From the NCBI RefSeq assembly GCF_000400465.1, contig NW_008806284.1, positions 300,001-332,000 of the forward strand: a DNA stretch of 32,000 bases. Reading direction: 5' to 3'. The notes beneath the pieces are model-generated. The model worked only from the letters and a program-made list of their open reading frames with translations, had not been told where the DNA came from and searched no databases. Below, piece after piece: positions 2,318 to 30,859 of this stretch. This stretch comes from Wallemia ichthyophaga EXF-994. Taxonomy: Eukaryota; Fungi; Basidiomycota. The position numbers and the translations under genes are program-made. Each line of letters opens with the position of its first letter. Position 1 is the stretch's first letter.

Positions 2318-2457
2318 TTCTCTCCGTTTCTTTTTCGCGTCTTGAAATACCTCGCTTCGAATTAGAAAATAACACGGACGCTTCCTCATACCAAAATTAG
2401 GGTTACTGAAATTTTTCATTTTTATTATTACATCGGTGTCTATCATCTAAAACGCCT

Positions 2458-7772: not shown

Positions 7773-8735
7773 CTAGAGCAAGTCACCCTTGGAAGAGTCC
7801 CAGGAACCACTACCAGCTGATGTATCCTTGGTTGCGCCAGTGGCCCAGTCACCTGAAGTGCCCTTGCCACCCATCTTGCCCTTGCCTCCCTTTGGACCAC
7901 CCATCATACCTTGTCTCTTGAGCAAATCACCGCCTGAAGATTCCCATGAGCCACTACCAGCTGAGGTGTCCTTGGTTGCACCAGTGGCCCAGTCACCTGA
8001 AGTGCCCTTGCCGCCTTCGCGTGCCGTCAAGCCTCTCTTACCACCCTGGTAAAATTGACCTCTCTTGAGTAAATCACCCTCGGAGGAGTCCCAGGAGCCA
8101 CTTCCAGCTGAGGTGTCCTTGGTTGCGCCAGTGGCCCAGTCACCTGAAGTGCCCTTGCCACCCATCTTGCCCTTGCCTCCCATACCGTGTGCTTGTCTCT
8201 TCAATAAGTCACCGTCTGAGGAGTCCCAAGAGCCGCTGGTTGCTGCAGTGTCCTTAGTGGCACCATTGGCCCACTCACCAGACCCAGCGCCTTTGCCAGC
8301 ACGCTTGAGCAAGTCACCCTCGCTGTGGTCGTTTTCACCTGCTGAGGCGGCGCTGTCTTTAGTAGTACCGTAGTTCCATTCGCCAGCTAAAGGATATTAG
8401 CTAAGACATTTCGGAAAGTAAAAGTCAACTCACAACCACCACCTGAACGTCTTACTCCGTCAGCTGCACGGCTTTGGTACTGGATTACTGTTTAGTTACT
8501 TTAAAATGCATCGAATGATACTCACGCCACGCTTCAAAAGATCACCCTTTGAGCTATCGGTTTCGCCAGAAGTGGCAGCGGTGTCCTTGGTAGCGCCGTT
8601 GGCCCATTCACCAGAGCCTGCGCCTGAGCGAGCGATCTAATGTGCTTGTGAGCGCCGTCATAGGTGCAAATAGTCACGTACCGGAGCGGCTGTTGCAGCA
8701 GCAACCATTGCGATTAAAGCGATTGAGAACTTCAT
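7773..8735 (-). CDS. Secreted Kex2-processed repeat protein (KEP), 274 aa, six GDLL-ending repeats. Exons 8735-8682, 8636-8526, 8479-8434, 8386-7773
   Basis: Signal peptide MKFSIALIAMVAAATAAP, introns of 45, 46 and 47 nt with canonical sites, and exon lengths summing to 825 nt. Repeats SG(E/D)W..G.TKD...GDLL are separated by six KR sites. Confidence 0.85.
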
Positions 8736-9228
8736 AGTATTTGAATTGATGTGGGAGTGTTGTAAAGAAGAATTGTTTTAGAATCTCTTAAATTTATATT
8801 TCATTTTAGCGCCATTTTTAGCGTAGCATTCCGAAGATCCGGCACGAATATTCAAATTTCAAATGGCCGTGGCAAATATGATAGACGATGAGCAAGTGCG
8901 AGTAGCTAGACCATCCTTGATGTTCAACACGTGCTGAATTGAGTGATGGAAGCTGAAGCGGGAGAGAAGTATGTGAAAAATTCAAGTAATTCAAACGATG
9001 CTCTTAAAATGGTTTTCTTAAGGAACTTGTACACATTAACAAGCTTCTGCAAGCTCTATACACGGCAAGGCAGTAAGACATCGTGTCTTATTTTGATCAA
9101 ACACACGCATTCTAGATAGCAAACATTGTAATATGATAATTTCTAAAAACAAATAGACACATAAGCTTATTCATATCCCAAAGTAGTCATCATCTCTATT
9201 ATTTCAAGAAGTCATCGTAATTTTCCTT

Positions 9229-9798
9229 TTACATTATATTTCTCCTAAGCAGCTCAACCTCACTTTGATCACTTTCACCTGCTGAGGCAGCACTGTCCTT
9301 AGTATTACCATAGTTCCATTCAACATCTACATTGAATTAGCTCAGACATCCTTCAAAGTTATGCTAAACTCACTTCTACCAGAAAGCTTGAAGCTGCTGA
9401 CATCAAATTGGCCTCGACGACGCTCAAGTAAATATGCGTCAGAGTTGTCGCAAATGCCATTGCCTGCTGAGCTGGTCGAGGTAGCGCTGGTAGCCCATTC
9501 ATTGTCATCAACTGAGCGACCATTATAAAGACCTTGCGATTGAATTTTCAGCTACTAAAACTAGCGTGATAATTACACACACGCCAAGAGCACCATGTCT
9601 GGACTCCTGGAGATTGCCTTGCGACCCTTCTGTCTCGCCAGAAGTGGCAGCGGTGTCTTTGGTAGCACTGTTGGCCCATTCACAAGAGCCTGCTTGTGAA
9701 CGAGCGATCTAGTGTGCCTGTGAGCGCTGCAAAGAAACACGTACTGGAGCGGATGTTGAAGCAACAATTATGGCGATCAATGCGATTGAAAGCTTCAT
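9229..9798 (-). CDS. Diverged tandem paralog of the KEP at 7773-8735 (three repeats); possibly pseudogenising
   Basis: MKLSIALIAIIVASTSAP, then a 36-nt intron 9744-9709, then IARSQAGSCEWANSATKDTAATSGETEGSQGNLQESR, then LYNGRSVDDNEWATSATSTSSAGNGICDNSDAYLLERRRG, then a 47-nt intron 9373-9327, then VEWNYGNTKDSAASAGESDQSEVELLRRNIM*. The middle intron needs a weak phase-1 donor to keep the frame. Confidence 0.6.
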
Positions 9799-11217
9799 TT
9801 ATATGATTTTATGGGAATGTATTGAAAAGAAAAGGAAAGCTCTGTACTTTCTCATTTAGATCTCATTTAACACATTCTTGCGTCACTTTATCGTGGTAAG
9901 ATAGAGAGCCGGCATAAGGAAGCATTTTTAGCTGGGGCAGTTTCGTGGATACCCGAAGACTATCATTGGAGATACTAACGCTAAAGTGAATGGTGTGTTA
10001 TACCGTTGTAGTGATTAGCCAAGCGAAATACAAAACGCGATAAATCCCGAAGAATGTGGAAGTAGCTTGTTTTTGGACTGTTAGGCATTTACACCACATC
10101 AAGCTAGCTTTGGCGAGGATTGTCTGATATTCAAGACAGCAAGACGATTGGTCATAATGTGATCACGACGCACATCCTCGAAGTATCCCAAAATGATAAG
10201 ATGAGGTGTAGAAAACGAAGCTTCAATTACTCGCATTACTAGAAGTAGCCATCTGGCCGACATGTAACTGGAACCCCTCTCGATTTCTAAGAGTAACTTC
10301 AACGCACCCAACAATTATAATAGCATGGGTATCACGACATTTGAAGCGATCAAATGACCTCTTTCAGAATTCTAATTCATCTATTGTTACAGTTCATAAA
10401 GATTTCTGGCAACATTGCGCGACGGTTCAATGTGAATCTGAAAGTCAAAGCTACAGAGCGAATGCATCTTGTAAAGATTTATATCGGATCAAGCCCCTGC
10501 TGATAATCGAGTGGAGCTCAGAGTAAGATGGATTTATTTTATACCTTTGCCGAGGCAGTCAAACCGCCAAACTTTATCTAAAAAACCAGCCGTCTGGTCT
10601 CATATTGCTCCGACAAGATGGAGCATTTTGACAGCTTTGATCACTGATTCGTAACTGAAGCTGGCCACTGACATGTCATGAAACTAATAAACTTAATTAA
10701 ATCCGCTCCGCTGGCCGTTGATCGGCAAATATCCAATCGAGGACTTCATAACCGTTCATTTTGACAGCACCCTCAAATGTTGCCAGGAACTAGCCGCTTG
10801 TAGGACGTATGAAGCGCATTAGAAAATATCAGAAATCGCGAGTAAGTGTGTGAATCCATATTTTTTAGATTGATTCACGTCTTGACTGAGTGTAGAAATG
10901 GGTGACTGAATTGCGTATGATGTATGCAAGAGTAAGACAATGAAGCAGTAGCATAGAAAATTTTCGAAAGCATTTGTGGTTGTTTTACAGTCACTCTGTA
11001 TGAAGATAAAGGGGTCTGTTGATAGACGTGCATAAGCAGCAATGAATAGCAGCGACTGAAACATCTTATAGAAGTATGACGTTTGTGGAAATTGACCTCA
11101 GCCAGGTTTGCTTGATGTGATGACTAAATGCTGAACAAATACACTCATTAACACCGTGAACGGCTATGAGGATCCCTAGTATACCAAAATACAGTTTTAC
11201 TTGACTATATCAGCCTG

Positions 11218-11830
11218 GAGCTCTTACAGCAACAGAAGCTTTCCAACAACAAAATGTCCTTATTACAATACTATATATGCTCATATATACCCTTAATTTG
11301 CGCCACATAATGCTTCAGCCTCGTTAGCTTGGCAGAATGACGAGATGTGACTATAGCAGAAGAATCATCAGCCCAGCTGGCTTTATAAGAAGCGCTATAT
11401 CTCTCTTGCTTTTCTACATCCCAAAAGACAGAAATGTACTTCAACACCGCCAAAGCTCTCGCCGTTCTTGCATTCACTGGCACCATCGCATCAGCAGCAG
11501 TCACACAACCAGACAACATCGCCCGTCGCAGAGATGAGAAAGACGCCAACGCCATCAAAGACCACAAGGATGACTACAACTATGGTAATGGTGTCGATTC
11601 CAAGAATGACAACAACCACGGCAAATACGACAAGCAAGACAAGCTATCTCACGAAGAGGCACTCAAGAAGCATCGCGAGGAAGTTGAGAAGCAAATCAAG
11701 CTGAACAATGAGGCTGCTGAGAAGAACAAAGCGGATGTCAAGGTTGGTTGAAGTGATGTTTGGTGAAAATCAGCTTACACTGTTTTACCAGAAGACAGAC
11801 GAATACTGGAAGTCTGACAAGAAAGATGAC
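11218..11830 (+). repeat. Near-identical segment (promoter, exon 1, intron) duplicated in inverted orientation at about 30250-30859
   Basis: Identity starts abruptly at GAGCTCT (11218 versus 30859) and continues through the TATA-rich promoter, exon 1 and the intron into EYWKSDKK. Confidence 0.95.
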
Positions 11831-12448
11831 AGCGATGAAATCAACTATAAGAAGCACGATGGTAAGCACGACAGTAACGACGAGAAACAAGATAGCAAGT
11901 ATGTCAACAAGAAGTCCAGCCATATCAAGCACGAGGATGATCGTTATGGTGGCAACGACAAGAAGCACAGCGGCGATAAACACAGCGACAACAAAAAGGA
12001 AGAGGATAACAAATACCACATGAAACATGACGACCAAATTTCAAGCGGTAAGAAGCATAGCAACAACGACATGAAGCATGACGACAAGATGGACAAAAAA
12101 GTGAAGCACGAAAATAATGATAAGAAGCATGATAATGAGGATTTCAGCGGTAGCAAGAAGCACGATGACAATAAATACAACGAAAAGACGTCTGGGAACA
12201 ACATTAAGATTCATGACAACGACATGAAACACGACGATGGCAAGTACGATGATAGAAAGTTAACTGAGAACAATTACGGCAGTAACGACAAGACGCACGA
12301 TAGTGACGTTGAACACGGCAACAACGGCAAGAATCAAGGTGACAAGAAGCATTACAATAAGCACAACGAAAACGACAAAAAGGCCGAGAACAAAAACGGC
12401 GAGAAGAACAACAACAAATACGACGACGAAAATAATGAAAAGAATTAA
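11434..12448 (+). CDS. Secreted His/Asp/Lys/Asn-rich hydrophilic repeat protein, copy A (321 aa). Exons 11434-11742 and 11792-12448
   Basis: Signal peptide MYFNTAKALAVLAFTGTIASA, dibasic site IARRR, a 49-nt phase-0 intron 11743-11791 (GTTGGT...TACCAG), then many KH(D/S/E/G)-type motifs. Confidence 0.85.
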
Positions 12449-12513
12449 GCATGCTGATCACTGCACATAGTAATCTTTCTGAATCATGTATTGAATCACG
12501 AATGAACTAAATT

Positions 12514-12577
12514 GTCTTGAATATGAACGAAATTGGAACCAAAAAGTCTTGAATATAAATGCAATTGGAACCAAAAA
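12514..12577. repeat. 32-bp tandem direct repeat, two copies (29/32 identical)
   Basis: GTCTTGAATATGAACGAAATTGGAACCAAAAA followed by GTCTTGAATATAAATGCAATTGGAACCAAAAA. Confidence 0.9.
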
Positions 12578-12841
12578 TTCTTAGCAGATGTTCTAGCACA
12601 GCCACGGCAAGTAAATCTGCAGTACGCTGATACTTGTTGCGCCGAATGAGCTTGAGCCGAAGCGATCCGCGCAGCAGCGTAAGGAAAAAGTTTACTGGCC
12701 GGGAGAAACCCAAAAATAATTAATGTAATTCGTAAAGGGGAGCTCTGCGAACGGCAGGATTCCTGCGTTCGTCCGTCGGCCAATTTACACGGCCAAAAAA
12801 AGAACGAGCAGCACCCTTATATAGACGAGGGAGGATGAAAT

Positions 12842-13468
12842 TTGGAGTGTTCATCAACATCCAAAACAAGAAACATGCCAGCAGCTACAGCAGCAAAAAT
12901 ACCGATCCCCATATTCTCGAGCAGCATCCAGGGCTTCGATCCATGTACGGCGTGGTGTCCAACGCTCCATTTAACGACGCACTCTTCTATAACGAGCAGC
13001 GGTGAGCTACTCGTGGATGTGCTGCAGTTCAACGAGACTATTGCAACGATATCGCTCAAACCTAATGGCAGGGGAGGACTCGGTAGATTTGGATATCTCG
13101 AAATGCAATTCGATAAAGAGATACATATGATGCCTGATACCGGATACAGCGCTCTTAGTGCGAGTCCACCGCGCATCTCAACGCCCTACCTCTCCACAGC
13201 GAAATGTGTTGGAAACGTAATACGCACCCAGAAAGAAGTCCTGGCGGATTTTGTGGAGAACAAGGAGAAGACACACCCGCTATTCAGAAGCATGAGGTCG
13301 AAGGCACACCAAAATCGATCATTCATCAACATCTACAAGGATGAAGCGGTGAATGGAGTTGAGTGTTTTATTCTGATAGTGTGTCGCAAGCTTTTCGCGG
13401 GTATAGGGTTGAATGAGAAAGCGCACCCACCGCACAAGACAAGCCATCACAAAAGCGTCAAGGTGTGA
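12842..13468 (+). CDS. Hypothetical protein (about 200 aa), no family recognised
   Basis: A 208-codon open frame with globular composition, preceded by a TATA-like CTTATATAG at about 12817. The start could be ATG 12875 (MPAATAAK). Confidence 0.55.
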   Translation: MECSSTSKTRNMPAATAAKIPIPIFSSSIQGFDPCTAWCPTLHLTTHSSITSSGELLVDVLQFNETIATISLKPNGRGGLGRFGYLEMQFDKEIHMMPDTGYSALSASPPRISTPYLSTAKCVGNVIRTQKEVLADFVENKEKTHPLFRSMRSKAHQNRSFINIYKDEAVNGVECFILIVCRKLFAGIGLNEKAHPPHKTSHHKSVKV

Positions 13469-13671
13469 GGGGGATGTAGGCAGTCTACGCTCATCCCACC
13501 AGTCAATTTATATCCAGTCAGTCCTACTAAACCATCCCCGCTAATCTAGCAATTCTGCAATCTAACAAAAATGCATTTAAGGCGTATATGAGATGCGTAT
13601 CGTGATGAATTATATTATGAAGATCTAAAAATGGCTTGCGGTTATGATATATTTGCTTCGTCTGTCTGCAA

Positions 13672-14212
13672 CTACACGATGCGATATGTGATCTGTTCGA
13701 CAAACATGTTGCTACTATACTTGGTATTATACAGTGCACTCTGCAATTCGAAAACGAAGCTATATAGTGTGAGATTGTGAATCATACACATAAGACACCC
13801 ACCTATTCAGATAATCTTTCTCCTGCTCCAGATCTGCATTGCTCTTCTTAAGCAGCAGCACCTCCTCCTTGAGCTGCGCCGTGATACGCTGACGCGCGCG
13901 AAAGTTAGCAACGTTTTGGCGATTGCGTTCTTTGCGCGTCTGTCTCGTGGACACCTGCTTCCCAACACTTGGTGACGGTGTTTTAGATGTTTTTGCGGAG
14001 CAAGACTCGGAGGAGGCATCTAAGCGCGAGTGGGAGTCTGAGAACTGAGAATCTTCTGCTTTTAACATGTTTGGGAAGGGGTGAGCTGTGGATTCTATAG
14101 TGCGCATCAGCTGCAATGTCCTTGACTCTACGCACGACGTACGGCATCCTTCCACTCTTACTGGGTATGCGTAATTTGCCACTGCTGCCGCTGAATTGTG
14201 GGACATTATCAT
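13672..14212 (-). CDS. bZIP transcription factor 1. Exons 14212-13803 and 13759-13672
   Basis: Basic region RKERNRQNVANFRARQR. A 43-nt phase-2 intron 13802-13760 extends the heptads: LKEEVLL-LKKSNAD-LEQEKDY-LNSFVFE-LQSAL. The 5' end is uncertain. Confidence 0.72.
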
Positions 14213-14778
14213 CGGGTGTAAACTATTAAAGAGCTGATGCAGCTTTTATGGACGCTTCAGCCCCTTGTGTTTCTCATTTTTTGGGGTGCCGCTGAACCAA
14301 ATGACAAATCTAGGCACACGGAGAGTGAGAGGGGAAAATTGCCCTGAGGAGCGATGGAGGGAGAACTTATGAAATTCTGCAGCTAATGCGCCGTGTGCGG
14401 ATGTCAAATGAGACGTATTTGCTGTTTTTCTGCACCTTGGGATACACGCTGCAAGCACTACATTCAAGTTAGGAACGATTATGTGCCTTATACCAGCTAA
14501 TAAAACTAAGGAGTCAAATTAAACTGGGCCAAGAACTTTCGGGAGGCATTTGATGCTTCCAGAAAAAGCCACCAAATGTTACCAAAAGCTACCGCTGTGG
14601 AGATGGCCGAGAGCTGAAGTGGAGAGATGTCGAATAAGCCTAGAGTATAGATATTTTGACGGATATCTGGTAGTACAAAATATTAATTGGCCGATCTAGC
14701 AGCCAGAATGTGAGATATGCGGGTGTAGAATACACAGTGATATTGGGACATAGCGTTTGTATGACTACCGTAATTTTT

Positions 14779-15464
14779 CTAGAAGATCCTTTGTGTGTAC
14801 ATATTGCCCCCCTCATAATGGCCCTGCTGCTCGAGTGAAAGGCGTCTATTCTCATCCTTTAGCGCGAGATTCTCCCTCTGTAGGCGCACTCGCTCCCGCT
14901 TCAGCCAGTCGTTTTCCATCTGCAGTGACTCTGTTTTGTACTGCTGACGGATTCTGAATCTACTCGCAGCCTGCTTGTTCCTCTCGCGCTGCTGGAGCTT
15001 CTTATCGGCGTCGTTGGTATCTGAGATATTGTGCTGGGTAGTAGTGCTGTTGCTGCCGAGACTATCTGCGGTACTGGCATTGGTATTGGTATTTAAGGAT
15101 GACTTCCTGCTCGAAGTCGCATTGCTGCCTTCAGATTCATACGAGCTGCGACGCGATCTGGCGAACGAGGGTTGCTGATGTATGTAGTGCGGCAGCGCGA
15201 ATGGCGGTATCTCTCTTTCCGGTGCTAGGGTATTTCTATGTTAGAGACATAGCCGAGACGCACGCCACTCACAGGCTTTAATACCGGTAAATCCGTTGGC
15301 GGGGTATGTTTGGTAAAAGGGACTTAAATAGGAGGATTCTTGGTGGGAATGTTAGCTGAGTGAGACGTCAACACATCTCACTCACCCTGCTGCGCTGTAC
15401 AACTCGCGCTGGTCGCATTTGAGTTGCCGGGGCTGTCGTTGTAATTGGTTTTGGTTTTGGACAT
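14779..15464 (-). CDS. bZIP transcription factor 2 (196 aa; absent from the ORF track). Exons 15464-15386, 15338-15273, 15224-14779
   Basis: KKLQQRERNKQAASRFRIRQQYKTESLQMENDWLKRERVRLQRENLALKDENRRL has canonical N-x7-R-x9-L spacing. Introns are 47 and 48 nt (GTGAGT donors, CTAAC branch sites), and the exons sum to 591 nt. Confidence 0.8.
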
Positions 15465-16387
15465 TTGAACATGAACGTATGATCAGAACCAGCTGTCGAT
15501 GGCTTTGTTCAGATCGCCCTCCGATTTTAATCAGATTGATGATCTGGTAACGCAACCCACTCGCGTGTTCGCTTAATGAAGGCAGTGCCTTATGGATGGA
15601 GAAAGCGCGTGGCTATGTTTGTGTATTGCTTCATTTTACTTCCATTCCACGCTCTTCCTCACATGCCTATCTTCGCGGCAGCAAATTTAATATAAATGGT
15701 CAGATGAGAATGCATGGACACAATCCGAGAAGGGGAAAATAATTGCAACGTGTACCAAACAGCCACGGGATATCGTGGATTCTTTTTTGATCCAAAAGTA
15801 AGCGTTTTGAATCCTCCGAGGACTCAACCCGGAGAAGAGGCATTAGTCCGAGATGCGCCAGGGTATTTTTGGCGCTGGAGGCTTCTGGACGTAAATTGAG
15901 TTTTCATGCACATACACAATTACGCACCCATGTTTACATCACAAAACCTCCGATAGTCCAAATTGCATTCTAAATATATCTCCGATAAAAAGGACAGAGA
16001 ATCAAATACATATCCATGACAGCGCTGAAAGCAGTCCCACGATTCTCCCGCATACGCCAACATACCACCGCGCCATGTGACATAAATCTTCAATATGTAA
16101 ACATCAAGTGGAGGTTAGTCAGCTATGACTAAACATCCCGTGGCGGGTAAGAAGTGGGTGTAAGGATCTTTAGGGGATTACTGTCCAAAACAACAAGATT
16201 GTGCTATTGTTTTTGAAAATTGGCCGCGGAAATGAAGCTGCCAATGCTGGGGATGCATATGCATGATTTCATCTGTCCGATCAGTGCGGAAGTGAATAAG
16301 CAAGTGTGAAAGCTGCCGCTCAGGCGCTCAAGCCAGAGCCCGAGCCCAAGCCATAGCGTCCACGTCTTCTCCTCCTTCTCAACATCG

Positions 16388-17176
16388 ATGAGCGTCGATA
16401 TTGATTACACCAAGCTCGATCAAAGCCTGGCAGACAATCTGCTCAGCATTCTCAATGAGCGTCTCGAAGAGATGCAGAAACCATCGATCCTCGGCCACAT
16501 CGAGTTTACGAATCTGAGTTGGTGGGTTTGAAGATGGCGGGAGATGCGCACCGCTGACGCATCCGCAAGGGGAGATATGGCGCCTGATATTGAACTGGAG
16601 GAAATTGGAGAGCTTTCTGAGGAGTTCAACGAGAGCGATGAGGAGGACGTGAATGGTGAGGATGAGGCGCACGAGGCGGCAGATCTCAAACACCCGGCAC
16701 AAATTAGAGACAGCAACAACAACCACAACGCCAGTGAATCACAACCCAAAAGAGCCTCCTCAACAATCCCAAATATGCAGATACAGTTGCGCATTACGCA
16801 CGAATCAGATATGCGTTTAACGCTGCTCACGAATCTTCTCGTAAACTTCCCAAGTCCAGGCTTTATGAGTTTGCCCGTCAAACTCGCAGTGCGGGGGATT
16901 GTGCTCCACTCGAAAGCCATCATCGGCATCGACAGCCAGAGACGCCAGGTGCATTTCTCACTGGTAGAGCCATACGACGAGAACAGCGAGGATGACGACG
17001 ATGTACAGAATCACATTCTCCAGAGTCTAGTCGTCGAGAGTGAGATTGGGGATGTGGACAGACACACACTCAAGAATGTGCGCAAGGTCGAGAATTTCGT
17101 ACTCGAATACCTGCGTAATCTTCTCAATAACGAGATTGTATGGCCCAATTACCACACGTTCATTCTCGATGATTAG
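16388..17176 (+). CDS. MDM12: ERMES complex SMP-domain subunit Mdm12. Exons 16388-16521 and 16570-17176
   Basis: MSVDIDYTKLDQSLADNLLSILNERL...KPSILGHIEFTNLSW|GDMAPDIELEEI; LLTNLLVNFPSPGFMSLPVKLAVRGI; VESEIGDVDRHTLKNVRKVENFVLEYLRNLLNNEIVWPNYHT. A 48-nt intron lies at 16522-16569. Confidence 0.93.
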
Positions 17177-17476
17177 CGTGTGCGATTGGCAGGGGAGTTG
17201 CACAAAATATACCACAAGCACAGCAAAAACATAGCTCGATTGTATAGAATACTCAATGAATTTGTATATTAGACGGCTCGAGGCGAGCGCGGAGACTACT
17301 ACGGATACATCTCGCAGCTAGCACAAGAAGAATTTGAGAAGACAGCACAGTTAATAAAAGGGCTAAAACACCTACACGCGCCTCTAATATACTCTCACTC
17401 GATTTTAAATATTTTGAAAATTTGGTGACGAGAAGACTTTTTCGATGTGAGTTTCTTAGACCGCAACAGCTTCAGC

Positions 17477-17631
17477 GTGAGTAGAATTTTGAAGCAGGGA
17501 GAGTACGCAGGGTTAGAGAAGCCATGTGGAATTGCTGAGCTTGTTTTTCATACTTTGGTTGTTTTTCTTACTTGGCTTGCTCGCTTTCGTACTCCCCAGC
17601 ACCTACAAACACATCACTAACAAATCCACAG
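17477..17631 (+). other. 5'-UTR intron of RPL5 (155 nt; alternative donor at 17447) containing a predicted long hairpin
   Basis: GTGAGT donors at 17447 and 17477, ACTAAC branch site at 17616-17621, and CAG acceptor at 17629-17631, 4 nt before the ATG. Complementary arms lie at 17494-17524 and 17573-17600. Confidence 0.65.
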
Positions 17632-17635
17632 TAAC

Positions 17636-18580
17636 ATGCCATTCGGTAAATAGACCTACTGTACACTTGCCACACCTCCTAACAAACCCTTAGTCAAGGA
17701 AGCCAAGAGCAACGCTTACTTCTCTCGCTACCAAGTCAAGTACCGTAGACGTCGTGAGGGAAAGACCGACTTCTACGCTCGTAAGCGCCTTGTGACCCAA
17801 GCCAAGAACAAGTACAACGCACCAAAGTACAGACTTGTCGTCAGATTCACCAACACCAACATCATCTGTCAAATTGTCTCTTCAAAACTTCAAGGTGACG
17901 TTACTTTGACCCAAGCTAGTGCACGCGAGCTTCCAAACTATGGTATGAAGAACGGTCTCACATCATGGACTGCAGCCTACGCTGTTGGTCTCCTCGTCGC
18001 CAGAAGAGCGCTCACCAAGCTCGGTTTGGCCGACAAGTACGAGGGTGATGTCGAAGCCACCGGTGAATACAGTCTCACTGAGCCACTCGGTGATGACGAG
18101 CCAAGACCATTCAAGGTCTTCCTTGACGTCGGTCTTAAGCGTACCTCCACCGGTTCCAAGGTCTTTGGTGCCCTCAAGGGTGCCTCAGACGGTGGTCTCT
18201 ACGTCCCACACTCCGAAAACCGTTTCCCAGGTTACGACATTGAGTCCAAGGAGCTCGATGCTGAGATTCTCCAAAAGTACATCATTGGTGGTCACATTGC
18301 TGAGTACATGGAGTCTCTTGAGGAGGAAGATGAAGAGAGATTCAAGAAGCAATTCTCTCGTTACCTTGCCGACGGTGTTGGCTCCGATGACATAGAAGAC
18401 ATTGTCTCCAACACCCACGAGGCCATCAGAGCCAACCCAGAGTACAAAAAGACTGAAAAGAGCAAGGACTGGGCTTCCGAGAGCAAGAAACACAAGGCTA
18501 CTAAGCTCACTAAGCAACAACGTGATGCTGGTATCCAACAACGTATCCAGTACTTCCAACAAGCTGAGAACGCTGAGTAA
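17636..18580 (+). CDS. RPL5: 60S ribosomal protein L5 (uL18). Exons 17636-17645 and 17694-18580
   Basis: MPFV|KEAKSNAYFSRYQVKYRRRREGKTDFYARKRLVTQAKNKYNAPKYRLVVRFTN...LDVGLKRTSTGSKVFGALKGASDGGLYVPHSENRFPG. There is a 48-nt intron at 17646-17693 and strong codon bias. Confidence 0.99.
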
Positions 18581-19145
18581 ACTCTCTTGTAGCATGCTCT
18601 TATATATTAACTGTCTGTTGTTTTACATGAGTTTGAAGGTGTGGTTGATGTGTTTGAATTATATGAAATTTTTAATCTCTCATTAAAGCGGAAGCCTAGG
18701 TAGACCTAATGAATAATTTAAGCAACCAGTTGATTCATTTTCAAACCTTGTACCGCTTGTGTTGCTTTTAGAAATGGAACACGTGGAGAATATTTTGGAC
18801 ACGCGGAGAGATCAACGAGAATGCAATACCGGATAAGAAAGTGAGTTTTTGAGGCCAAGCATACGTATGGTATTGCTAAAAACTTCACGTTCACGTGTCG
18901 GAGTAATGGACAAGTAGTTAAGAGCTCAGCTTCAGCACATTTCCTCTTTTCAGTCTTGACATGGATAGTTGAGGACAATTGGTGGACACTGAATACTAGA
19001 TGAAGATACTAGACACTCGTGGACATTTAGTTGAAAGTACTTGCCTTAGCTGTCTTGGGAGCTGATCTTACATTATAGGTTGTGGCTACCTCGCCACTGG
19101 CATGTCTTCTCTATCACATATGCGCTTTATAATTTTCAGTTGCCT

Positions 19146-19538
19146 TCACTGTATGCTCACTCCTCTAAACCACTCCACAAAACCTGGCTGATCCGTGCGT
19201 GTATGGGCTTGGCATAATTTAGAAAATAATAAATCCCAAAAAGTAGAGGAAATGAATCTGACCAAGGCATAGTCTACTAACTTTAATTCAAACTTCGTCA
19301 TGACTTGGGTTGATGGTATTGAAGATGAAGACGCCAAAGCTGCTGAAACCGTTGGCATTTCTGAAGGCCTTGTATCATTAACTAGTGCTCTGATTTCATA
19401 TGGAAGATTGTTTGAGTCATTGTGACGCAAAATACCAGTGTTTGTGTGTACATAAGTCTCGGATGCGAGCAACTCTATGATTTTGGCCGTTTTCGAATGT
19501 AGCATCTTCATAAAAAGCAAGGTCTTGGTCGCCTTCAA
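19146..19538 (-). CDS. Possible exon of a spliced hypothetical gene
   Basis: A 130-codon frame with a plausible GTGAGC donor near its 3' end. No family recognised and the exon structure is unresolved. Confidence 0.25.
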   Translation of the reverse strand: MKATKTLLFMKMLHSKTAKIIELLASETYVHTNTGILRHNDSNNLPYEIRALVNDTRPSEMPTVSAALASSSSIPSTQVMTKFELKLVDYALVRFISSTFWDLLFSKLCQAHTRTDQPGFVEWFRGVSIQ

Positions 19539-20814
19539 GAGTTACATCTTCCTCGACAGGTGGATATGGCTCAGAAACTTGGAAGGCGACCTCTGAAACT
19601 GCAGTAAAAGTGCTAGAGAGCTACTTGTCCATTACAAGACCAAACCCGCCATAGATTACAATTGCTCGTATAAAAGCAACGCCGTCTGATTGAAACTTGC
19701 AAAGGTAGAATGATCAAAGGATAGCGAAGGGAAATGTTCAAGACACCGTTTTGGACCTGATCGAGAGGCGCGCAGAATTATTCAAATTCGTTAAACGCGG
19801 CGATCTTTGAAGCGGAAGGAAAATTAGGAAGTGGTGAGAGTAAACTTGTCAAAGGTTTAAACATAGTTATTTATTAACCTACCTTTATCTCCAACCACTG
19901 CTCCAGAGCTCAAAATTTGCATTCGAAGATCCCAGATAATGACAAACGCGTCTTGATTCCTATCATTTAGCCGAAATAAACACGTCAAAGTGAAAAGCCT
20001 CGACAAGTCCTATCATGCGCCCAAGTCTTCTTTTTAGAATACATGCGCAGCTTGACCTATCAATCATTTCTTAAGCCATGCATCCATGAACTTGTGCGAG
20101 GCAAATTACGGGAAGCAAGCTCATTAGCGGCGATTATCTGAGCACGCCTCCGCTGAAAAGATTCTCCTCTTTGAAGATTTTCAGACGAATATCGCCCTGC
20201 CCAAAGATCTCTTGGATACTTAAGTCCTGATTTGCAATAGCCCAAGATGACGAGATGTTTTAAAAGATTCAATTGTCACACATGATATTCATCGTCGTTC
20301 TAGCTATAGTCAGAGGACAATGTTCAACGGGTGCTGATGCTGTGGGAATTGAGTGCAAGCTTGCGACGGTGCTATCATTAAAGAACGTTAGTCTGAAATC
20401 TGCATTAAAGTTCAGACGATATGACGATGTGAAGACAGCAACGCCTTAATTCAATCATGGTGGAGGGCAATACATCAATTCACCAGATGATCAAGACATA
20501 TGCATAGGAATAGGGGTGAATTGCTAGATCTGTAGAGTTTCACTTACACGAAACACGATTGTATAGGTAATCTATTGTCGAAATACTTGAACAGCTCCTA
20601 GGCATAAGGTACAAGGCACGTCTCCTTCCAATTTATTCCGCTGGGCGAAGTTTAAGCTGAGTAGCTATGAAATCAACAGATAGGCATATAATAATTTAAA
20701 TATATTCATAATCCTGTCAACTTTGTTATACATACAATCAAGCTATCCTTATTATAGTAGAAATCAATAAATAGAAAGTCCTAAAGTGACGAGTGAAAGT
20801 GCAATGTCTCGCCG

Positions 20815-23012
20815 CTAAACAGCCTTGTTTCCCTTCTTATTTTCCAGCTCGTGTATTTCATTCTGTAAGTCTCTCTCCTTCCGATCTCTTTCCATCCGTT
20901 CAAGCCCAGCTTTTGCCATGTTGTGCGTTCGAAACATAGGGTTAATCAACCGTCGCCATTGTTTGCCGGTGAAGTTGACTGGACTACCCAGTCCACTATA
21001 GATGCAAAAGTCGTACGCTAATGCACCTAAGATCGAGCCGCCGAAGGATCCCAAGATGGGCCCAGTTAGCCACCTGCTATTGTGAGATGATGATGTGTGA
21101 TGAGAGAAAATTACCCACCACCATCTATCGTGCGTCCATAGCTCCTTCCCGTAGCCAACGCAACTGAGCATGATGCGTGGGCCGAGGTCGCGAGCTGGGT
21201 TCATGGCATATCTGGTGAGTGTGATTGCTCAGGGAAAATTCACGTGCTAAAGACACCACACTCACCCGCTTAAAGCACCTAGAGACGTACCTATGGCCAT
21301 AATGATTAGTGCAAGAACTAGAGCACCCAAAGACGCTCCAGGTGGCGTATTGTCACGATCACCAAGGGCTAAAACACTCGATGTCAATACTGCAGTCGCG
21401 ATGACTTCCTGATACACTGCAAGACCGATGGTAGTATTTTCTGTTGTGGGGATTGTAGGGAATAACGCAGCTGTGCCACTCGAAGACACCGTCTTTGCGG
21501 GATCTATGTTGTAAAGAGACTGACAGTACATTCCATAGACCGTAAAGCTTCCGATAAATGCACCTAGAACCTGTGCAATCCAGTATTTCCAAAGCATTTT
21601 CCAAGGAAATCCTCGAAATAAAGCAAGAAAAAGAGTGATGGCTGGGTTAAGGTGGCCACCAGAAACACCACCAGCAATGTAAACGCCAGTCATGACTCCA
21701 ACGCCGAATCCCCAATTCAAATTCGTATATGCAGCTGTCTGATTTGTATAAATAAGTGTCTGACAGCTGGCGCCAGTGCCAATAATCATAAATACACACG
21801 TCCCGAGCATCTCTGCGAGCGGTTCCCGCATGTATTCTCTAATGTTGAACCAAAAATTGTAAATGGGTTCATCAGGATTCTCATACTTTTCTTGTTCAAT
21901 GGGATCATCAAGCCACTTATTTTCCATTTCTCCAACCTGCCCAGTGCCACCGCCTTGTGGGTAATTTTGCGACTTGTCAGTGTTATATGACAGAGAGCGG
22001 TCCTGATCAGCGGCCGGTGTGTCCTTTTGACCATCTATAATCCCACCGACCTGACCTTCCTCCTTTCCCTGAGTATCGCGATTAGTTAAATCCTTATCGT
22101 CTGACTTCTTGTCTGCCATCTCCTTGTCTGCCTGCTCCTTGTAGTAGCTATGCTGCTGTGTCTGGGTAGGAAACCTTTTGCTAGGCTGAGGACGAGCAAA
22201 CGACGGTCTTCTGTTGTCATCGATAACACCCCCGACCTGAAATGGTGTTCTGCTTGATTTTGTACTTTTATTGTCTTCCATCATTCCGCTTACTTGGCCA
22301 AAAGGAGTATTATGCTGACCAGGTGTTATTCCAGGTGTTATTCCAGGTGTTGTTCCAGGTGTTGTACCCGGTAAATTGAAATAGTCACCGGCCTGGTTGG
22401 TGTGATGAGATGGTGGCTGGGAACTCGAGTAGCTAGAGCCGAATTTGGTTGATCCTAAGTTTCCCGTGGGGAGAGATGGTGTGTTACCCGTGATACTAGA
22501 CGCCTGCTGATAGCCTAGTTCCCTGCCTCTGGAGAAAACGGCTTCTGCAGCTGCGTTTAAGACTTCTTGGCCACTTCCGCTAATATCGTTGTTTCTGCCT
22601 TGAGTCTTTCCACTTTCATGATTGCTAGGCTTCTCTGAATCCTCAGCAGGGAAGACACCCCCAATGCCCCAAAGGGGACGTTTGCTTTTTACTCTGCGCA
22701 TGTGCTCATTGTGCTTAGCTGTAATATTATTTTGGTGCTGTTGCTGTTGTTGCTGCTTCTGCTCTTTCTGGTTCTTTATAAAGCTTTCTTCGTCGTTTGC
22801 CTGTTGTTGCTGAGAATCGGTGAGTTTATCCTGTTGCTCGGGTTGCTTGAGCTGATCTCCCCCTGTGGGTGCTTGTGATTGTGCTTGAGGGGATCCTACG
22901 TGTGGTGTGTTTGGTCTGCTCTCTTCTTCTGGCTCCTCTTTCAACGTATCGTGCGTTGATATCTATGAACGCCTTAGAACACTATCAGATACATAGACAT
23001 GGCACTCACCAT
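20815..23012 (-). CDS. Aquaglyceroporin (MIP family, GlpF/Fps1-like), 698 aa with a long cytosolic N-terminus. Exons 23012-23010 (ATG only), 22962-21266, 21211-20815
   Basis: Two NPA boxes (SGGHLNPAIT and SG|YAMNPARDLGPR). The ar/R filter is W/G/Y/R by alignment to GlpF motifs. Introns are 47 nt (23009-22963) and 54 nt (21265-21212). Confidence 0.95.
22319..22372 (-). repeat. 12-bp tandem repeat (about 4.5 copies) encoding PG-TTPG-TTPG-ITPG-ITPG in the aquaglyceroporin N-terminus
   Basis: + strand: CCAGGTGTTATT x2, CCAGGTGTTGTT, CCAGGTGTTGTA, CCCGGT. Confidence 0.92.
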
Positions 23013-23480
23013 AAAGTTGAAATTTTGTCCTTATCGTAAATTCCGAACGGCTTACCAAAAGTGAGGATTTTTGACAGTGTGTCATTCTGATTTCACCGAT
23101 TTTTCATATTTTTGAGTAATGACGACATGACTTTAAAGTTATATAACAGCCGTTGCCGTAAACCTTATATTATTAGCCGTTCCTTCTTAGCCCTGTAAAC
23201 CAAGCGCTGAATGTCCGTCTCGATGCCGGTGATGCCGCCGTTATCACGAGATATTTTACAAATTAGCTGCATTCGTAGATATACATGTACATTCCTGATC
23301 GCTAGCCGTGGCGTGCCTCAATAAAGAAGGAAAGGGTCCTTTGGTTTACAACGGAGTGCCTGATTTGCGAGAAAAGTGTATTTAGCGTGTTTAATTCGTC
23401 TGGATAAGCTTCCACAGGCTATACACCAAATCATGCCTCCGCTAAAATCTCTCTGACTCCCACTACCTTCACCCTACGTT

Positions 23481-24572
23481 ATGACGTTGCGAGGATTTCT
23501 GCAGAACGCCAGGCTGCCCGTCATACAAGCGCCCATGGCCGGTGCCAGCACGCCCAAGATGGCGATAAGCGCGAGTAACTGCGGTGTACTAGGAAGTATC
23601 GGCTGCGGAATGATGCAGCCTAACGCACTCAAGAGCGCAATTAGAGAGACAAAAGCGGGGACTGAGAGACCATTTAATGTTAATTTATTCGTAACGGACA
23701 ATCAAGAAGGATACAATGTGGACAGCGTCCGCGATAGGTTGGCGTGGCTATACGACTACTATACGGAGATGGGACTGGATTCACCACGTCCATCCACATT
23801 CGCACCCAAATTCGAGGAGCAGTTTGAAGCCCTCCTGGAAGCCCAGCCTCCTATTGCGTCGTTTGTCTTCGGTGGGATAGATATTGCACGCGTAAATGCC
23901 TTGCATGAGCGAAATATATCTGCAAGTGATGTAGCTTTACAATTCGCACTACTCACGACCATGTAATCTCAGGTAATAGGCGCCGCCACCACACCAACTG
24001 AGGCTGAATACTGGCAGAGAGTGGGTGCAGATGGGATAGTTTTGCAGGGAATAGAGGCTGGTGGACACAGGTGCAGTTTCCTAGATCCAGAAAATCCAGG
24101 CGAGCCGCTCAGTGAGCTGCTCAAAGCGACGAGACATCTACACACACCGCTCATCGCAGCTGGCGGGATAATGAATGGTAGGGACGTGAGAGGTGCTTTG
24201 AGGCAAGGAGCAGACTGTGCACAGCTCGGCACGGCATTTTTGACAACCGAGGAGTCACCTGTACCTGCATCATACCGTGAATCTCTCATCGCTGCCCATA
24301 ATGACGATACCACTCTCACAAAGGCCTTTTCAGGGAGATGGGCACGCGGTATTAGGAACAGATTTACAGATATGGCTGGAGTGCAATTCACAGCTCCTTA
24401 TCCAGTTCAGAATGCCCTCACTCAGCCTCTGCGTAGCAATGCAGCAACACATCACCGCTCAGATGAGTTATCACTGTGGGCAGGTATGGGTGTTGGGGCT
24501 GTTCGTGACTCTCCCTCTACTCCACACCTCATCGATAAGCTGCAGAGGGAATATGATGGCTATAATATATGA
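23481..24572 (+). CDS. Nitronate monooxygenase / 2-nitropropane dioxygenase family flavoprotein (346 aa). Exons 23481-23921 and 23973-24572
   Basis: PVIQAPMAGASTPKMAISASNCGVLGSIG; PFNVNLFV; GADGIVLQGIEAGGHR; PLIAAGGIMNG; AQLGTAFL; TKAFSGRWARGIRN; LSLWAGMG. The intron is probably GC-AG (23922-23972). Confidence 0.93.
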
Positions 24573-24679
24573 ACTTGAAGAATATATGTAATATTGTATT
24601 CAATTAACTCGCTTACAAAAATAAACTATAACAAGACTTGCGTTGCTGTGTTTCTGAAAATTTTCTTAGACTACCCAGG

Positions 24680-24973
24680 CTAGTAATCATAATCATTTGG
24701 GCCTGGCTCATAGTCTGTTACTTGAACGCGGTAAAACTTGTTCTTGCTGCCAGGAGTTTCATTTTCGTTGGGGTCTGCGTTGAGGAGTGTATGTGATATA
24801 CCGCCTCTCTTGAGCGGATAACGTGGCTTTTGCGGGTGTTCAGCGAGTTCAGTGTCTTTTGAATGCTCAGATTTCCTAGGGTGTTCGCAGTCACCCCCCT
24901 TTATTGGCACAGGCGATGCTGCTGTGACAACCACTAGCATAATTAAGAGCAGTGTACACAATTGCCAGTTCAT
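24680..24973 (-). CDS. Small secreted protein (97 aa) with one KR site
   Basis: Signal peptide MNWQLCTLLLIMLVVVTAASP, an internal EHPRK/EHPQK duplication, PLKR|GG, and an acidic Tyr-rich C-terminus. Confidence 0.65.
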   Translation of the reverse strand: MNWQLCTLLLIMLVVVTAASPVPIKGGDCEHPRKSEHSKDTELAEHPQKPRYPLKRGGISHTLLNADPNENETPGSKNKFYRVQVTDYEPGPNDYDY

Positions 24974-25564
24974 TTCTCAGAAGCAGTTCACTGTGCTCTT
25001 TGAACTGTGGCTGATGTTGCTCTAACTTCCACTTCTTCGCCACCTTCATACCATTCCATCCATCGGTGATTGAAATTTAGACTAAAGGCCGGGAACAATC
25101 CATGTGGAAAGATCAGCAGACAGATTTTGATGTGACGGGATAAATATAGGTAGGATACATGATTTACACAAGAATTATGAGAAACGTGGTGTGTCTTAAC
25201 ATTCAACCAAGTTGAAGTGATGACTGGAGAGTCAGTAAAGTTCTGGTAAGGCTGTAATACCCACTTGAGCCGGCTTGGCTGCTACTATTGGCATGAAAGC
25301 CGCTAACGATAAAAGGAAAGATTTGGATTCTTGAGGGACTCGTAGGTTTTGATGGTGAAGTAAAGTGGAGAGAAATATCACAAATACAGCAAACAACGTC
25401 ATCATATCATACCTGCTGCGCAAACATTTGCTTCCTTTTCAAAAGACAATATGCGATCAAGATGACATCAGAAAAAATCTTGGCTAATCAAACGCATTAT
25501 TGTAGAGTGATGTAAACATAGTATACAAGCAGGCGTTAAAGGCATGTCTAAGAAAATGAGACAT

Positions 25565-25833
25565 TTAAATAGCCTTGTCTAAGGCGCCGTTAGCAACGTC
25601 ATTCAAAAGACGCTTCTCTTCCTTCAGGAGGCTTAGTAAAAATGAAAACACACCACTTTAGTCCACACTTACAGTTCCACGCTTGAGGATCTTGTCAGCA
25701 GCGCCGTTGGCGACGTGGTCGAGGAGCTGAGCTGTTTTAGTATGCGGGTATGTGCTAGTAAAATTCCACTCACTGGTGCAGCAAAGGCGGTAGAGAGAAG
25801 GGCAATGGTGGCAGCGATGGCTGAGAGCTTCAT
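25565..25833 (-). CDS. 56-aa secreted two-repeat Kex2 peptide precursor (absent from the ORF track). Exons 25833-25774, 25726-25673, 25621-25565
   Basis: Spliced translation MKLSAIAATIALLSTAFAAP|LLDHVANGAADKILKRGT|EEKRLLNDVANGALDKAI*. Introns are 47 nt (GTGAGT...ACTAA...CTCAG) and 51 nt (GTAAGT...ACTAAG...GAAG), both phase 0. Confidence 0.82.
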
Positions 25834-26605
25834 TTGAGCGATGGAAGTTGTCTGAGGAAAGCGTGTTGCGCGAATATTTATTCATTCAACCCGCGTTTAC
25901 CTTCCTTTTCCGGATATGCTAAAATTTTACATTCAAGAGATGTCGCATGTGAGAATTGGAAATTGATTGATTGAATTAATACAGAATCAAAGTTTTTGAT
26001 GATTTGGTTGATGCTGTATCGTCAAATGGCTCAGCTAGTGTTTGGAAGGTCCTTTCTGGTTCTGAGAATTCCCTCAGCAAAGTTCTTAAATGAATCTTGT
26101 AGGATAGGATGTGCTGTGGATGACGTTGAAGTGGCTATAACGAGACCAGTGACGATTGCTAAAAATTTCATTGCCTTGTGAGGAGTAGATGCGCAAAGCT
26201 GAGGAAGAAGATTATAATATAAAAAGATGCCTGCCTGAATTACTTATTTCGGTGTTTATTTGATTTAATATGTCGCAGTTTTGACTCATATTTTTGAGCG
26301 AACGAGTGTGAACAGGCTAGGATTTATAACATTGTTCTGTTGATGATAAAGCATTTTGCCGGTAGAATAACAAATTATCGGTTTCTTTGTTGCCAGCGGT
26401 CACGTGAAATCGCTCGTAACGAACACCAACCATGACACACTAAGACATTTACAATCAATTTAGCCACTATAGAATGCGCTTGAAAGCGCTTAAAAACGTT
26501 CATTGACTCATTTATTCCATTGACTCAACTACGGATGACGAAACTCGGTCACCGCAGACCGAGCGACACTGAGAAATCACTTCATCGACAGCTTAATCGA
26601 AAACA

Positions 26606-28179: not shown

Positions 28180-28494
28180 ATGACAATTGAAACAGGTGAC
28201 GAGAAGAAAGTATACAAAATCCGCCTTCAGCTCACGGCCACAGATGCCGCGTTCCAAGACATTTTCGAGCTTATCAATCAGAGTGAGGTGTTTTAGTGAA
28301 AGATGCTAGGCTTATACATTCACACAGCTAGCAATAGGGTATGCACACTTTTACAATACGAGTCAGCCGGTATCTATCGTTGGCTGGACGTTGTCTCCTC
28401 ATACAATTCCTTATACAGGCTGCAACACGAGTACTACGGCGGCGCAATTATAGAGGACTTCGTTCTCATAAACAACCTTCCTCCTCCTTATTGA
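28180..28494 (+). CDS. Small hypothetical protein (89 aa), possibly PB1/ubiquitin-like fold. Exons 28180-28282 and 28328-28494
   Basis: MTIETGDEKKVYKIRLQLTATDAAFQDIFELINQT|SNRVCTLLQYESAGIYRWLDVVSSYNSLYRL... A 45-nt phase-1 intron (GTGAGG...CACAG) joins the two frames. The fold guess is weak. Confidence 0.55.
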
Positions 28495-29832: not shown

Positions 29833-30643
29833 TCAGTATTTCTTATCGTCCTTGTACTTATCTTTGTTGCTGCTGTGCTGTTTGTCGTTGCTGTCGGACT
29901 TTTTGTCGCTTGACTTTGTATCGTCGGGCTTGCCATCGTCGTGTTTCATGTTGTTGTGCTTATCGTCGTAATTTTTATGCTGCTTCTTTTCACTTCCGTC
30001 CTTCTCACCACCATGCTTCTTGTTATTGTTGTCATGCTTCATTTCGTTATATTTCTTTTGGTCATGATACATGTCTTGCTCGTTGTCCTCGTAATTTTTG
30101 TTGTCGCTGTGCTTCTTGCCATTGTCAGTATACTGCTTATCTTGGTGCTTCATACCGCTGGACTTCATGTTGTCATACTTGTCATCATGTTTCTTGTCGT
30201 TGCTGCCGTGCTTGTCATCATAATTTTTGTCATTGCTTTCATACTTGTCATGCTTCTTGTCAGACTTCCAGTATTCGTCAGTCTTCTGGTAAAACATTGT
30301 AAGCTAATTTTCACCAAACATCACTTCAACCAACCCTGACATCCGCTTTGTTCTTCTCAGCAGCCTCATTGTTCAGCTTGATTTGCTTCTCAACTTCCTC
30401 GCGATGCTTCTTGAGTGCCTCTTCGTGGGATAGCTTGTCTTGCTTGTCGTATTTGCCGTGGTTGTTGTCATTCTTGGCATCGACACCATTACCATAGTTG
30501 TAGTCATCCTTGTGGTCTTTGATGGCGTTGGCGTCTTTCTCATCTCCGCGACGGGCGATGTTGTCTGGTTGTGTGACTGCTGCTGATGCGATGGTGCCAG
30601 TGAATGCAAGAACGGCGAGAGCTTTGGCGGTGTTGAAGTACAT
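29833..30643 (-). CDS. Secreted His/Asp/Lys/Asn-rich hydrophilic repeat protein, copy B (253 aa). Exons 30643-30335 and 30285-29833
   Basis: Exon 1 differs from copy A at 3 of 103 residues and has the same 49-nt intron. The repeat exon is shorter and rearranged (KKHDKY, MKHQD, MKHDN, MKHDDGK). Confidence 0.85.
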
Positions 30644-30859
30644 TTCTGTCTTTTGGGATGTAGAAAAGCAAGAAGGATATAGCGCTTCTTATAAAGCCAG
30701 CTGGGCTGATGATTCTTCTGCTATAGTCACATCTCGTCATTCTGCCAAGCTAACGAGGCTGAAGCATTATGTGGCGCAAATTAAGGGTATATATGAGCAT
30801 ATATAGTATTGTAATAAGGACATTTTGTTGCTGGAAAGCTTCTGTTGCTGTCAGAGCTC
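30250..30859 (-). repeat. Inverted copy of the 11218-11830 segment
   Basis: Reverse-complement match to the copy A promoter, exon 1 and intron. Confidence 0.95.

Follow-up and report, generated by a model that had tools for sequence, protein, structure and literature searches.

Two kinds of predicted secreted propeptide gene, probably unrelated, in a 32-kb segment of the Wallemia ichthyophaga genome

In Saccharomyces cerevisiae, prepro-alpha-factor (MFalpha1/2) consists of a signal peptide followed by tandem 13-residue copies of the peptide, set apart by KR-containing spacers and with the last copy placed at the stop codon. The basidiomycete Ustilago maydis has a secreted repeat protein, Rep1, that is cut at KR into about ten peptides of 30-50 residues, which are retained in the cell wall and work in bulk, not as signals; mating pheromones in basidiomycetes are as a rule lipopeptides. 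The class called Kex2-processed repeat proteins (KEPs) takes its definition from Le Marquer et al. 2019 (PMC6339444) and Umemura 2020 (PMC7329392), with prepro-alpha-factor as the reference KEP (PMC6339444). KEPs are a recognised but functionally obscure source of peptides in fungi, and Wallemia has already been flagged as KEP-rich: the survey in PMC6339444 lists Wallemia ichthyophaga with 6 KEPs and names both this species and W. sebi as rich in them. Here we describe three genes, A, B and C, on the minus strand of a 32-kb stretch of W. ichthyophaga EXF-994 (contig NW_008806284.1, positions 300,001 to 332,000; the whole stretch is called the window hereafter), which a first-pass annotation had joined in a single dispersed family of peptide precursors.

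Gene A and its tandem copy B belong to a Wallemia-specific KEP family, for which we define a repeat logic and an intron history and which is tied to salt-induced expression. Gene C, a three-exon peptide gene of 56 codons that lies 16 kb from the pair and is under strong purifying selection, is unannotated at the strain locus that was inspected. Both A/B and C are ordinary members of the known class of such precursors, and they are probably two unrelated kinds of secreted propeptide gene, which corrects the idea that they form one dispersed family.

Gene A and the long KEP family

Genes A, B and C were rebuilt from the sequence. The spliced model of gene A, a long KEP of 274 residues, has four exons (8735-8682, 8636-8526, 8479-8434 and 8386-7773, minus strand). 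Its N-terminus, MKFSIALIAMVAAATAAP, opens with MKFS, and inspection of it shows a basic n-region, a core of about 12 hydrophobic residues and the motif A-x-A. Six repeats follow, of the form SG(E/D)W(A/N)xG(A/T)TKD..(S/A)G......GDLL; KR stands after five of them, and the sixth runs to the stop codon. The gene offers six units and seven KR/RR sites, where the KEP rule asks for at least three similar motifs set apart by KR, RR or KK (PMC6339444). Its repeats score 60-63 bits against the hidden Markov model (HMM) of the family, and the tandem-repeat period is 144 nt. Three introns, all read on the minus strand, interrupt the gene: intron 1 (8637..8681; 45 nt, phase 0) directly after the signal-peptide ...TAAP, intron 2 (8480..8525; 46 nt, phase 0) after the first LLKRG, and intron 3 (8387..8433; 47 nt, phase 1), which the first-pass annotation did not mention, before (S)GEWNYGTTKD. 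The splice junctions are identical in two independent ab initio models, TIB27615.1 and GME3023_g; the latter, as given in the 2013 supplements, starts at Met10, which truncates the signal peptide (PMC3849046). Among the rows listed in that source, published expression values for genes of the window cover only A and GME3036_g, and for A (GME3023_g) Table S6 gives 15.6 reads per kilobase per million mapped reads at 10% NaCl and 39.6 at 30% NaCl, a 2.5-fold rise (false discovery rate 3e-38; PMC3849046).

A HMMER search with the last exon of A against 1.84 billion representative proteins brought up only eight true relatives, and those of them that were traced belong to W. ichthyophaga, to W. mellicola or to Wallemia-like contigs (Logan and ENA assemblies). 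A word-indexed protein search with full-length A, in which the best 8,000 candidates were scored, gave 0 matches and missed even A's own models. W. mellicola carries two tandem long KEP genes beside HSA/Myb and ELO, in the same gene order as positions 1421-5000 of the window. From seven long KEP genes in about five genomes we assembled a set of 33 repeat units, which share a core of a fixed 27 residues with the pattern x-G-x-W-(A/N)-x-G-(A/S/T)-T-...-S-G-...-G-D-L-L. KR or RR directly follows DLL in 29 of the 33 units, and two more units stop right after DLL, i.e., at the very point where the other units would end once cut and trimmed of their basic residues. Across species, the spacers that separate the units are unrelated.

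The introns of the long genes differ in how widely they are held. Intron 1, after the signal-peptide proline, is present in 8/8 long KEP genes, one codon off in the case of two W. mellicola genes. Intron 2 was found in A (one codon past KR), in L015 (six codons past KR) and, in a form open to two readings, in B; the other five of the eight genes lack it, namely L014, both W. mellicola genes and both genes of L009. Because it is missing in these five and shifted where present, intron 2 is, to judge from the genes at hand, a late, lineage-restricted trait. The position and phase of intron 3 recur in B, L015 and L014. Taken together, the long genes read as a genuine KEP family, present only in Wallemia-like fungi and conserved with synteny.

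Gene B (9229..9798, minus strand) is a degenerate tandem paralogue of A with ~146-151 residues and three recognisable repeats. It begins with MKLS at 9798, and its intron 1 (9744-9709, 36 nt, phase 0) follows ...TSAP; its intron 2 can be read either as 31 nt in phase 0 or as 46 nt in phase 1. The relationship to A is clear from tblastn (E 1e-19 to 1e-23), from direct repeats of 74-83% identity, and from the scores of B's units against the long-repeat profile (29.1, 53.2 and 55.7 bits, with noise at no more than 5.3). The first dibasic site of B is gone, LQES standing where A has LLKR, and B looks like a decaying copy. In the NCBI model of B (EOR00592.1/J056_000790), exon 2 is frame-shifted, which destroys the first repeat.

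We propose that the A/B precursor would enter the endoplasmic reticulum through its N-terminal signal peptide. In the late Golgi, Kex2 would cut past each LL(K/R)R and a Kex1-type carboxypeptidase would trim the basic pair, and A would yield six mostly acidic, Gly/Ser/Thr-rich, Trp-containing peptides of 31-46 residues, together with two short spacers. Across the family, repeat number and spacers would turn over fast around the fixed 27-residue core. The gene structures, their conservation, membership in the family by sequence and the absence of detectable homology between A and C are shown by the analysis; signal-peptide function, the Kex2 and Kex1 steps and the role of the peptides are inferred. 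The product is most likely an extracellular or wall-associated peptide of high abundance, not a toxin.

Alternatively, A could act as an intact, repetitive, disordered secreted or cell-wall protein in which the KR sites are incidental. Its Gly/Ser/Thr-rich repeats are of low complexity, no amphipathic signal was seen in them, and their cleavage is a prediction; B, one dibasic site short, is still conserved in the traced W. ichthyophaga strain annotations. Incidental sites, however, would hardly keep KR/RR at the same post-DLL position in 29 of 33 units from about five genomes while the spacers diverge, and terminal units that stop at DLL are a hallmark of KEP and alpha-factor-type precursors (PMC6339444). 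We therefore regard an intact A as improbable.

Read as a processed precursor, A is like known KEPs in having a predicted signal peptide and six near-identical units split by KR/RR, the last of them at the C-terminus. It differs from them in that its repeat has no Pfam match and its homologues are found only in Wallemia-like genomes, and also in its long, acidic units (a 27-residue core and products of 31-46 residues). In size and number the products are comparable to those of Rep1, as that protein is described, yet A's predicted peptides are hydrophilic and acidic rather than surface-active.

Two further observations concern long KEP genes outside the window. A more divergent pair (L009 3852-4536 and 6274-6930; L010), whose unit is SWNNGSTKDTSAGSGTWENE.GGDLLRR and lacks ANGA, adjoins importin and Fcf1/UTP23 genes, a context unlike that of the window; one of its copies is broken by an assembly gap. 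In W. mellicola, the 708-residue model P0122 (L007/L008 10001-12653) joins a small secreted open reading frame (MKFSLIGLSLVIAVATAGP...) to an SBF-family transporter and to the first of the long KEP genes.

The mini precursor gene C

Gene C encodes a mini precursor of 56 residues in our rebuilt model (exons 25833-25774, 25726-25673 and 25621-25565, minus strand). Its protein reads, exon by exon, MKLSAIAATIALLSTAFAAP, LLDHVANGAADKILKRGT and EEKRLLNDVANGALDKAI: a signal peptide, then LLDHVANGAADKIL, KR, GTEE, KR and LLNDVANGALDKAI, directly before the stop codon. The two introns (47 and 51 nt, both phase 0) lie after AAP (AAP/GTGAGT) and after LKRGT. The same three-exon structure, with canonical splice sites, is present in L005 (Logan SRR25399871) and L012/L013 (ENA), and C was compared across the three Wallemia species that these loci and the window represent. 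Between species, the exons are 68-91% identical, whereas the introns, at 37-53%, are unalignable. Synonymous changes outnumber nonsynonymous ones (16:4, 25:9 and 20:8), and third codon positions hold between 18/23 and 31/44 of the substitutions. Peptide 1, of 14 residues, is invariant in the three species and peptide 2 has one change; the spacer between the KR sites varies. By these measures gene C is under purifying selection and is a real gene for a predicted KR-separated two-peptide precursor.

The annotations give some room for doubt that C is a gene at all. It is uncalled in the NCBI annotation of the locus in one W. ichthyophaga strain (L006), it is not among the gene rows listed in the 2013 supplements (PMC3849046), and an alternative acceptor 3 nt upstream of exon 2 changes the reading. 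A chance arrangement of short open reading frames and GT-AG pairs, however, hardly accounts for three exons and canonical splice sites kept in three species, for the gap between exon and intron identity, for the bias to third positions or for an invariant peptide 1, and its probability is so slight that it can be set aside for practical purposes. An exon-per-peptide gene such as C would escape standard annotation.

C is best read as an independent mini-precursor with one 14-residue peptide per exon, the first followed by KR and the second by the stop codon. With two copies and two KR sites, it falls short of the KEP rule of at least three repeats, and in this it is unlike the KEPs; the same source notes that some alpha-pheromone precursors have fewer than 3-4 repeats (PMC6339444). 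Its layout is that of prepro-alpha-factor, with two 14-residue copies, and C is predicted to work like a two-copy precursor of the alpha-factor type. It differs from alpha-factor in that it has no sequence similarity to it, no pro-region and no X-Ala/X-Pro dipeptides after KR (the spacer being GTEE), and in that each copy has an exon of its own. The likeness does not imply a pheromone role for C, because the pheromones of basidiomycetes are normally lipopeptides.

No match to the C peptides came from two scans of JGI metagenomes with degenerate DNA, and on contigs that carry more distant ADH orthologues (L011 of W. mellicola and two short ones, L016 and L017) neither C nor its neighbours E and D (described below) were found nearby. 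The idea that the C 14-mers form amphipathic helices was dropped, their hydrophobic moments being 0.33-0.36 (p 0.07-0.21 against shuffles). Between C and D lies another conserved stretch (~25230-25330, minus strand), whose counterpart in L005 (11685-11830) has a signal-peptide-like open reading frame (MQFFTLLALAAIVPFLAARPIP) and, after an intron, a second exon that is short. In the window its ATG reads ATC and in L012 it is unalignable; the stretch, which may be a decayed mini gene or the 5' untranslated region of D, was excluded from the base-rate sample for introns.

Kinship between A/B and C

The features from which the first-pass annotation had built its single family are all present. A starts with MKFS, B with MKLS, and C fits the same MK(F/L)S form (at 8735, 9798 and 25833). 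In all three, a phase-0 intron comes right after AP (45, 36 and 47 nt), and in A and C a second phase-0 intron comes after the first LKRG(T) (46 and 51 nt). The first repeats of A and C both end in (L/I)L-KR, and both contain ANGA encoded by the same 12-mer, GCCAACGGCGCT, at 8592..8603 in repeat 1 of A and at 25700..25711 in peptide 1 of C (both minus strand).

Profiles place C outside the long family. For the long-repeat HMM, built on the 33 units, true units score at least 29 bits and the best unrelated six-frame fragment 5.3; the exons of C get 0-1 bit, which puts them at ranks 82-215 of the 6,355 six-frame fragments, and when scored in isolation they reach 1.1-2.6 bits, on (V)ANGA only. 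The mini-peptide HMM, run on A, gives 2.8 bits from the four residues ANGA alone, which is within noise. In Smith-Waterman alignments with segment shuffling, C against the long precursors had z values of -0.2 to 2.4, the range obtained for unrelated secreted proteins of the window. Likewise, hhalign paired C with the long family at a probability of 17.9% (score 19.4) over 19 columns that cover only the signal peptide, and the controls lay close by: C and D at 5.7% (score 17.4, signal peptide only), and the long family and E at 10.6% (score 20.0, signal peptide plus the start of the mature region). The invariant Trp (position 4), G-x-T and SG that mark the long repeats are all absent from C. 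A profile alignment had been named in advance as a way to refute the common family, and here it leaves C in the noise, with homology to A undetectable.

GCCAACGGCGCT occurs exactly twice in the window; its per-word expectation is 0.06, but the word was picked after the fact, and by our own arithmetic chance pairs of 12-mers in a 32-kb window number of the order of a hundred. In the orthologues of C the 12-mer reads GCAAACGGTGCT and GCCAACGGTGCT, and long-family orthologues use several synonymous versions. Because synonymous sites thus differ in the orthologues of both A and C, we judge that the 12-mer is not inherited from a shared ancestor. As for the tetrapeptide, 3.4% of the shuffles of a C 14-mer have some tetrapeptide in common with A/B, against 14.5% for the 36-residue mature region, and D and the protein of the gene at 11434 each have one tetrapeptide in common with A/B. 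The MK(F/L)S start is also seen in E and in an unrelated secreted open reading frame of W. mellicola. In the contig set that yielded L014, a long KEP gene lacking intron 2, C is present and has both introns. Convergence and coincidence are the best reading of the features in common (the MK(F/L)S start, LKRG ending, ANGA, 12-mer and intron close to the first KR), and these features caution that start, tetrapeptide, 12-mer and intron placement can coincide in short secreted-peptide genes with no detectable homology.

A detectable relative of C lies next to it. Gene E (26031..26171, minus strand) is intronless and encodes a secreted protein of 46 residues (MKFLAIVTG...HP-ILQDSFKNFAEGIL-RTRK...); it adjoins C, on the same strand, in all three species. 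C and E align by hhalign with 91% probability (E 1e-6, score 36.4) over 37 ungapped columns, i.e., the signal peptide and the whole first peptide, and Smith-Waterman comparisons of C with the E orthologues in L005 and L012 give z values of 3.7-8.6. Both have a signal peptide that ends in P, a 14-residue (I/L)L...(I/L)L peptide and a basic site. On sequence evidence, E appears to be the nearest detectable relative of C, and C groups with it in a small E-C-D cluster.

Several points weigh against the reading of A/B and C as two unrelated kinds of gene, with C allied to E. ANGA, which the first-pass annotation had taken as a family mark, is indeed not common in unrelated genes: its 22 occurrences in 213,634 six-frame residues all fall in long KEPs or C genes. 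C and all eight long KEP genes have a phase-0 intron right after the signal-peptide Pro, and five other signal-peptide genes, admittedly a tiny sample (D, E, the 11434 gene, L007:10001 and L011:983), lack it; this intron is the one shared feature left unexplained. Short, fast-evolving peptides could have lost all detectable similarity. Alignments of C and E restricted to the mature parts are not significant (p 0.06-0.49), most of what the two share is in the signal peptide and at the peptide's ends, and E is intronless. In addition, the signal peptides were called by inspection, the splice junctions rest on ab initio models and conservation, and Kex2 processing of A and C is a prediction.

The post-Pro intron and the rarity of ANGA would fit a descent of C from a long KEP gene whose repeat shrank from 27 to 14 residues and whose copies fell to two, with the signal-peptide exon, the post-AP intron, the ANGA core and the LKR site retained. 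So would the fact that in both families a peptide ends in (L/I)L(K/R)R and the stop codon comes at the last copy. Such endings, however, are expected to converge, given that Kex2 sites require LKR. Descent also meets a profile signal that is nil beyond ANGA, an hhalign score at the level of unrelated signal peptides, a 12-mer that has changed in the orthologues, and the loss from C of the Trp, G-x-T and SG positions; intron 2 is lineage-restricted in the long family and yet sits in C alongside L014, which lacks it; and the relative of C that is significant, E, has no intron. Shared ancestry of A and C is not supported, and the single-family idea fails every sequence test that was run. What stands of it is that A and B are tandem paralogues and that C is a precursor in its own right; the ancestry that was to join C to A/B is borne out neither by profiles nor by hhalign or Smith-Waterman alignment. 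Because the post-Pro intron is shared and only five control genes bear on it, we still leave the shared-ancestor reading a small chance, while holding it to be unlikely.

To our knowledge, no Kex2-type peptide signals are known in this basidiomycete lineage, and the thought that the two peptides of C, together with the leader peptide of E that is related to them, form an unannotated class of Kex2-released diffusible signalling peptides in Wallemia is one that we offer tentatively and with more doubt than conviction. The hydrophobic moment of the E peptides is marginal against shuffles (p about 0.02). In the relatives, E is a repeat protein of 108-146 residues (L005 10526-10965; L012 1937-1611, minus strand) with spacers of the (K/T)RQDAP type and repeats resembling DLGIDLDY.KINQNILNTIAGVL; in W. 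ichthyophaga, everything past the first peptide has been lost, leaving the signal peptide and one C-like peptide.

The other secreted genes of the window

The window is a segment of a fungal chromosome with introns of ~45-50 nt. The genome of W. ichthyophaga is given as 9.6 Mb with 4,884 genes and 2.41 introns per gene (PMC3849046). At 17792-18580, the open reading frame of RPL5 shares 99% identity with W. ichthyophaga E3P78_04034 and 83% with its W. mellicola counterpart. Seven small secreted-protein genes lie in the window (A, B, the 11434 gene, D, C, E and the 30643 gene), and a Pfam search of A, C, D, E and the 11434 protein returned no family.

The first-pass annotation had pictured six Kex2 substrates forming an island of secreted peptides, counting the genes at 11434, 24973 and 30643 along with A, B and C. 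The secreted genes are there, and dibasic sites are present in those three as well. The gene at 11434 (11434..12448, plus strand; exons 11434-11742 and 11792-12448) encodes a K/D/H/N-rich secreted protein of 321 residues with a single RR, 10 residues past the predicted signal peptide. Its inverted paralogue (29833..30643, minus strand; exons 30643-30335 and 30285-29833) encodes 253 residues, is likewise K/D/H/N-rich and has a single RR. Gene D (24680..24973, minus strand) encodes a secreted protein of 97 residues with one PLKR/G site, and this KR is kept in L005 and not in L012. Taking residues at their ordinary frequencies, we put the chance that a protein of 100 residues carries one KR or RR at roughly 40%, and we therefore count these three genes as weak Kex2 candidates.

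Nor do the genes form one island. They fall into the clusters A-B and E-C-D, which are separated by RPL5, MDM12 and an aquaglyceroporin gene, and in W. mellicola the A/B block and RPL5 lie in different genomic contexts. The genes at 11434 and 30643 are products of an inverted duplication, whose arms (11218-12003 and 30074-30859; 786 nt, 92% identity) take in the promoter and first exon of each. The supposed island is two independent clusters plus an inverted duplicate pair.

Some minor observations concern the neighbours of these genes. The NCBI model of D (L006 12973-13342) uses an upstream start in another frame and drops the signal peptide that is conserved in L005 and L012. GME3036_g (28180-28491 of the window, plus strand), an 89-residue protein with no known similarity, tops the genes raised at 30% NaCl in Table S6 of PMC3849046, with a log2 change of +11 but on 0 against 12 reads. 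The arms of the inverted duplication bracket an 18-kb segment with RPL5, the aquaglyceroporin gene, NMO, D, C, E and ADH, and in L005, a related species, the MIP-NMO-D-C-E-ADH part lies the other way round with respect to RPL5.

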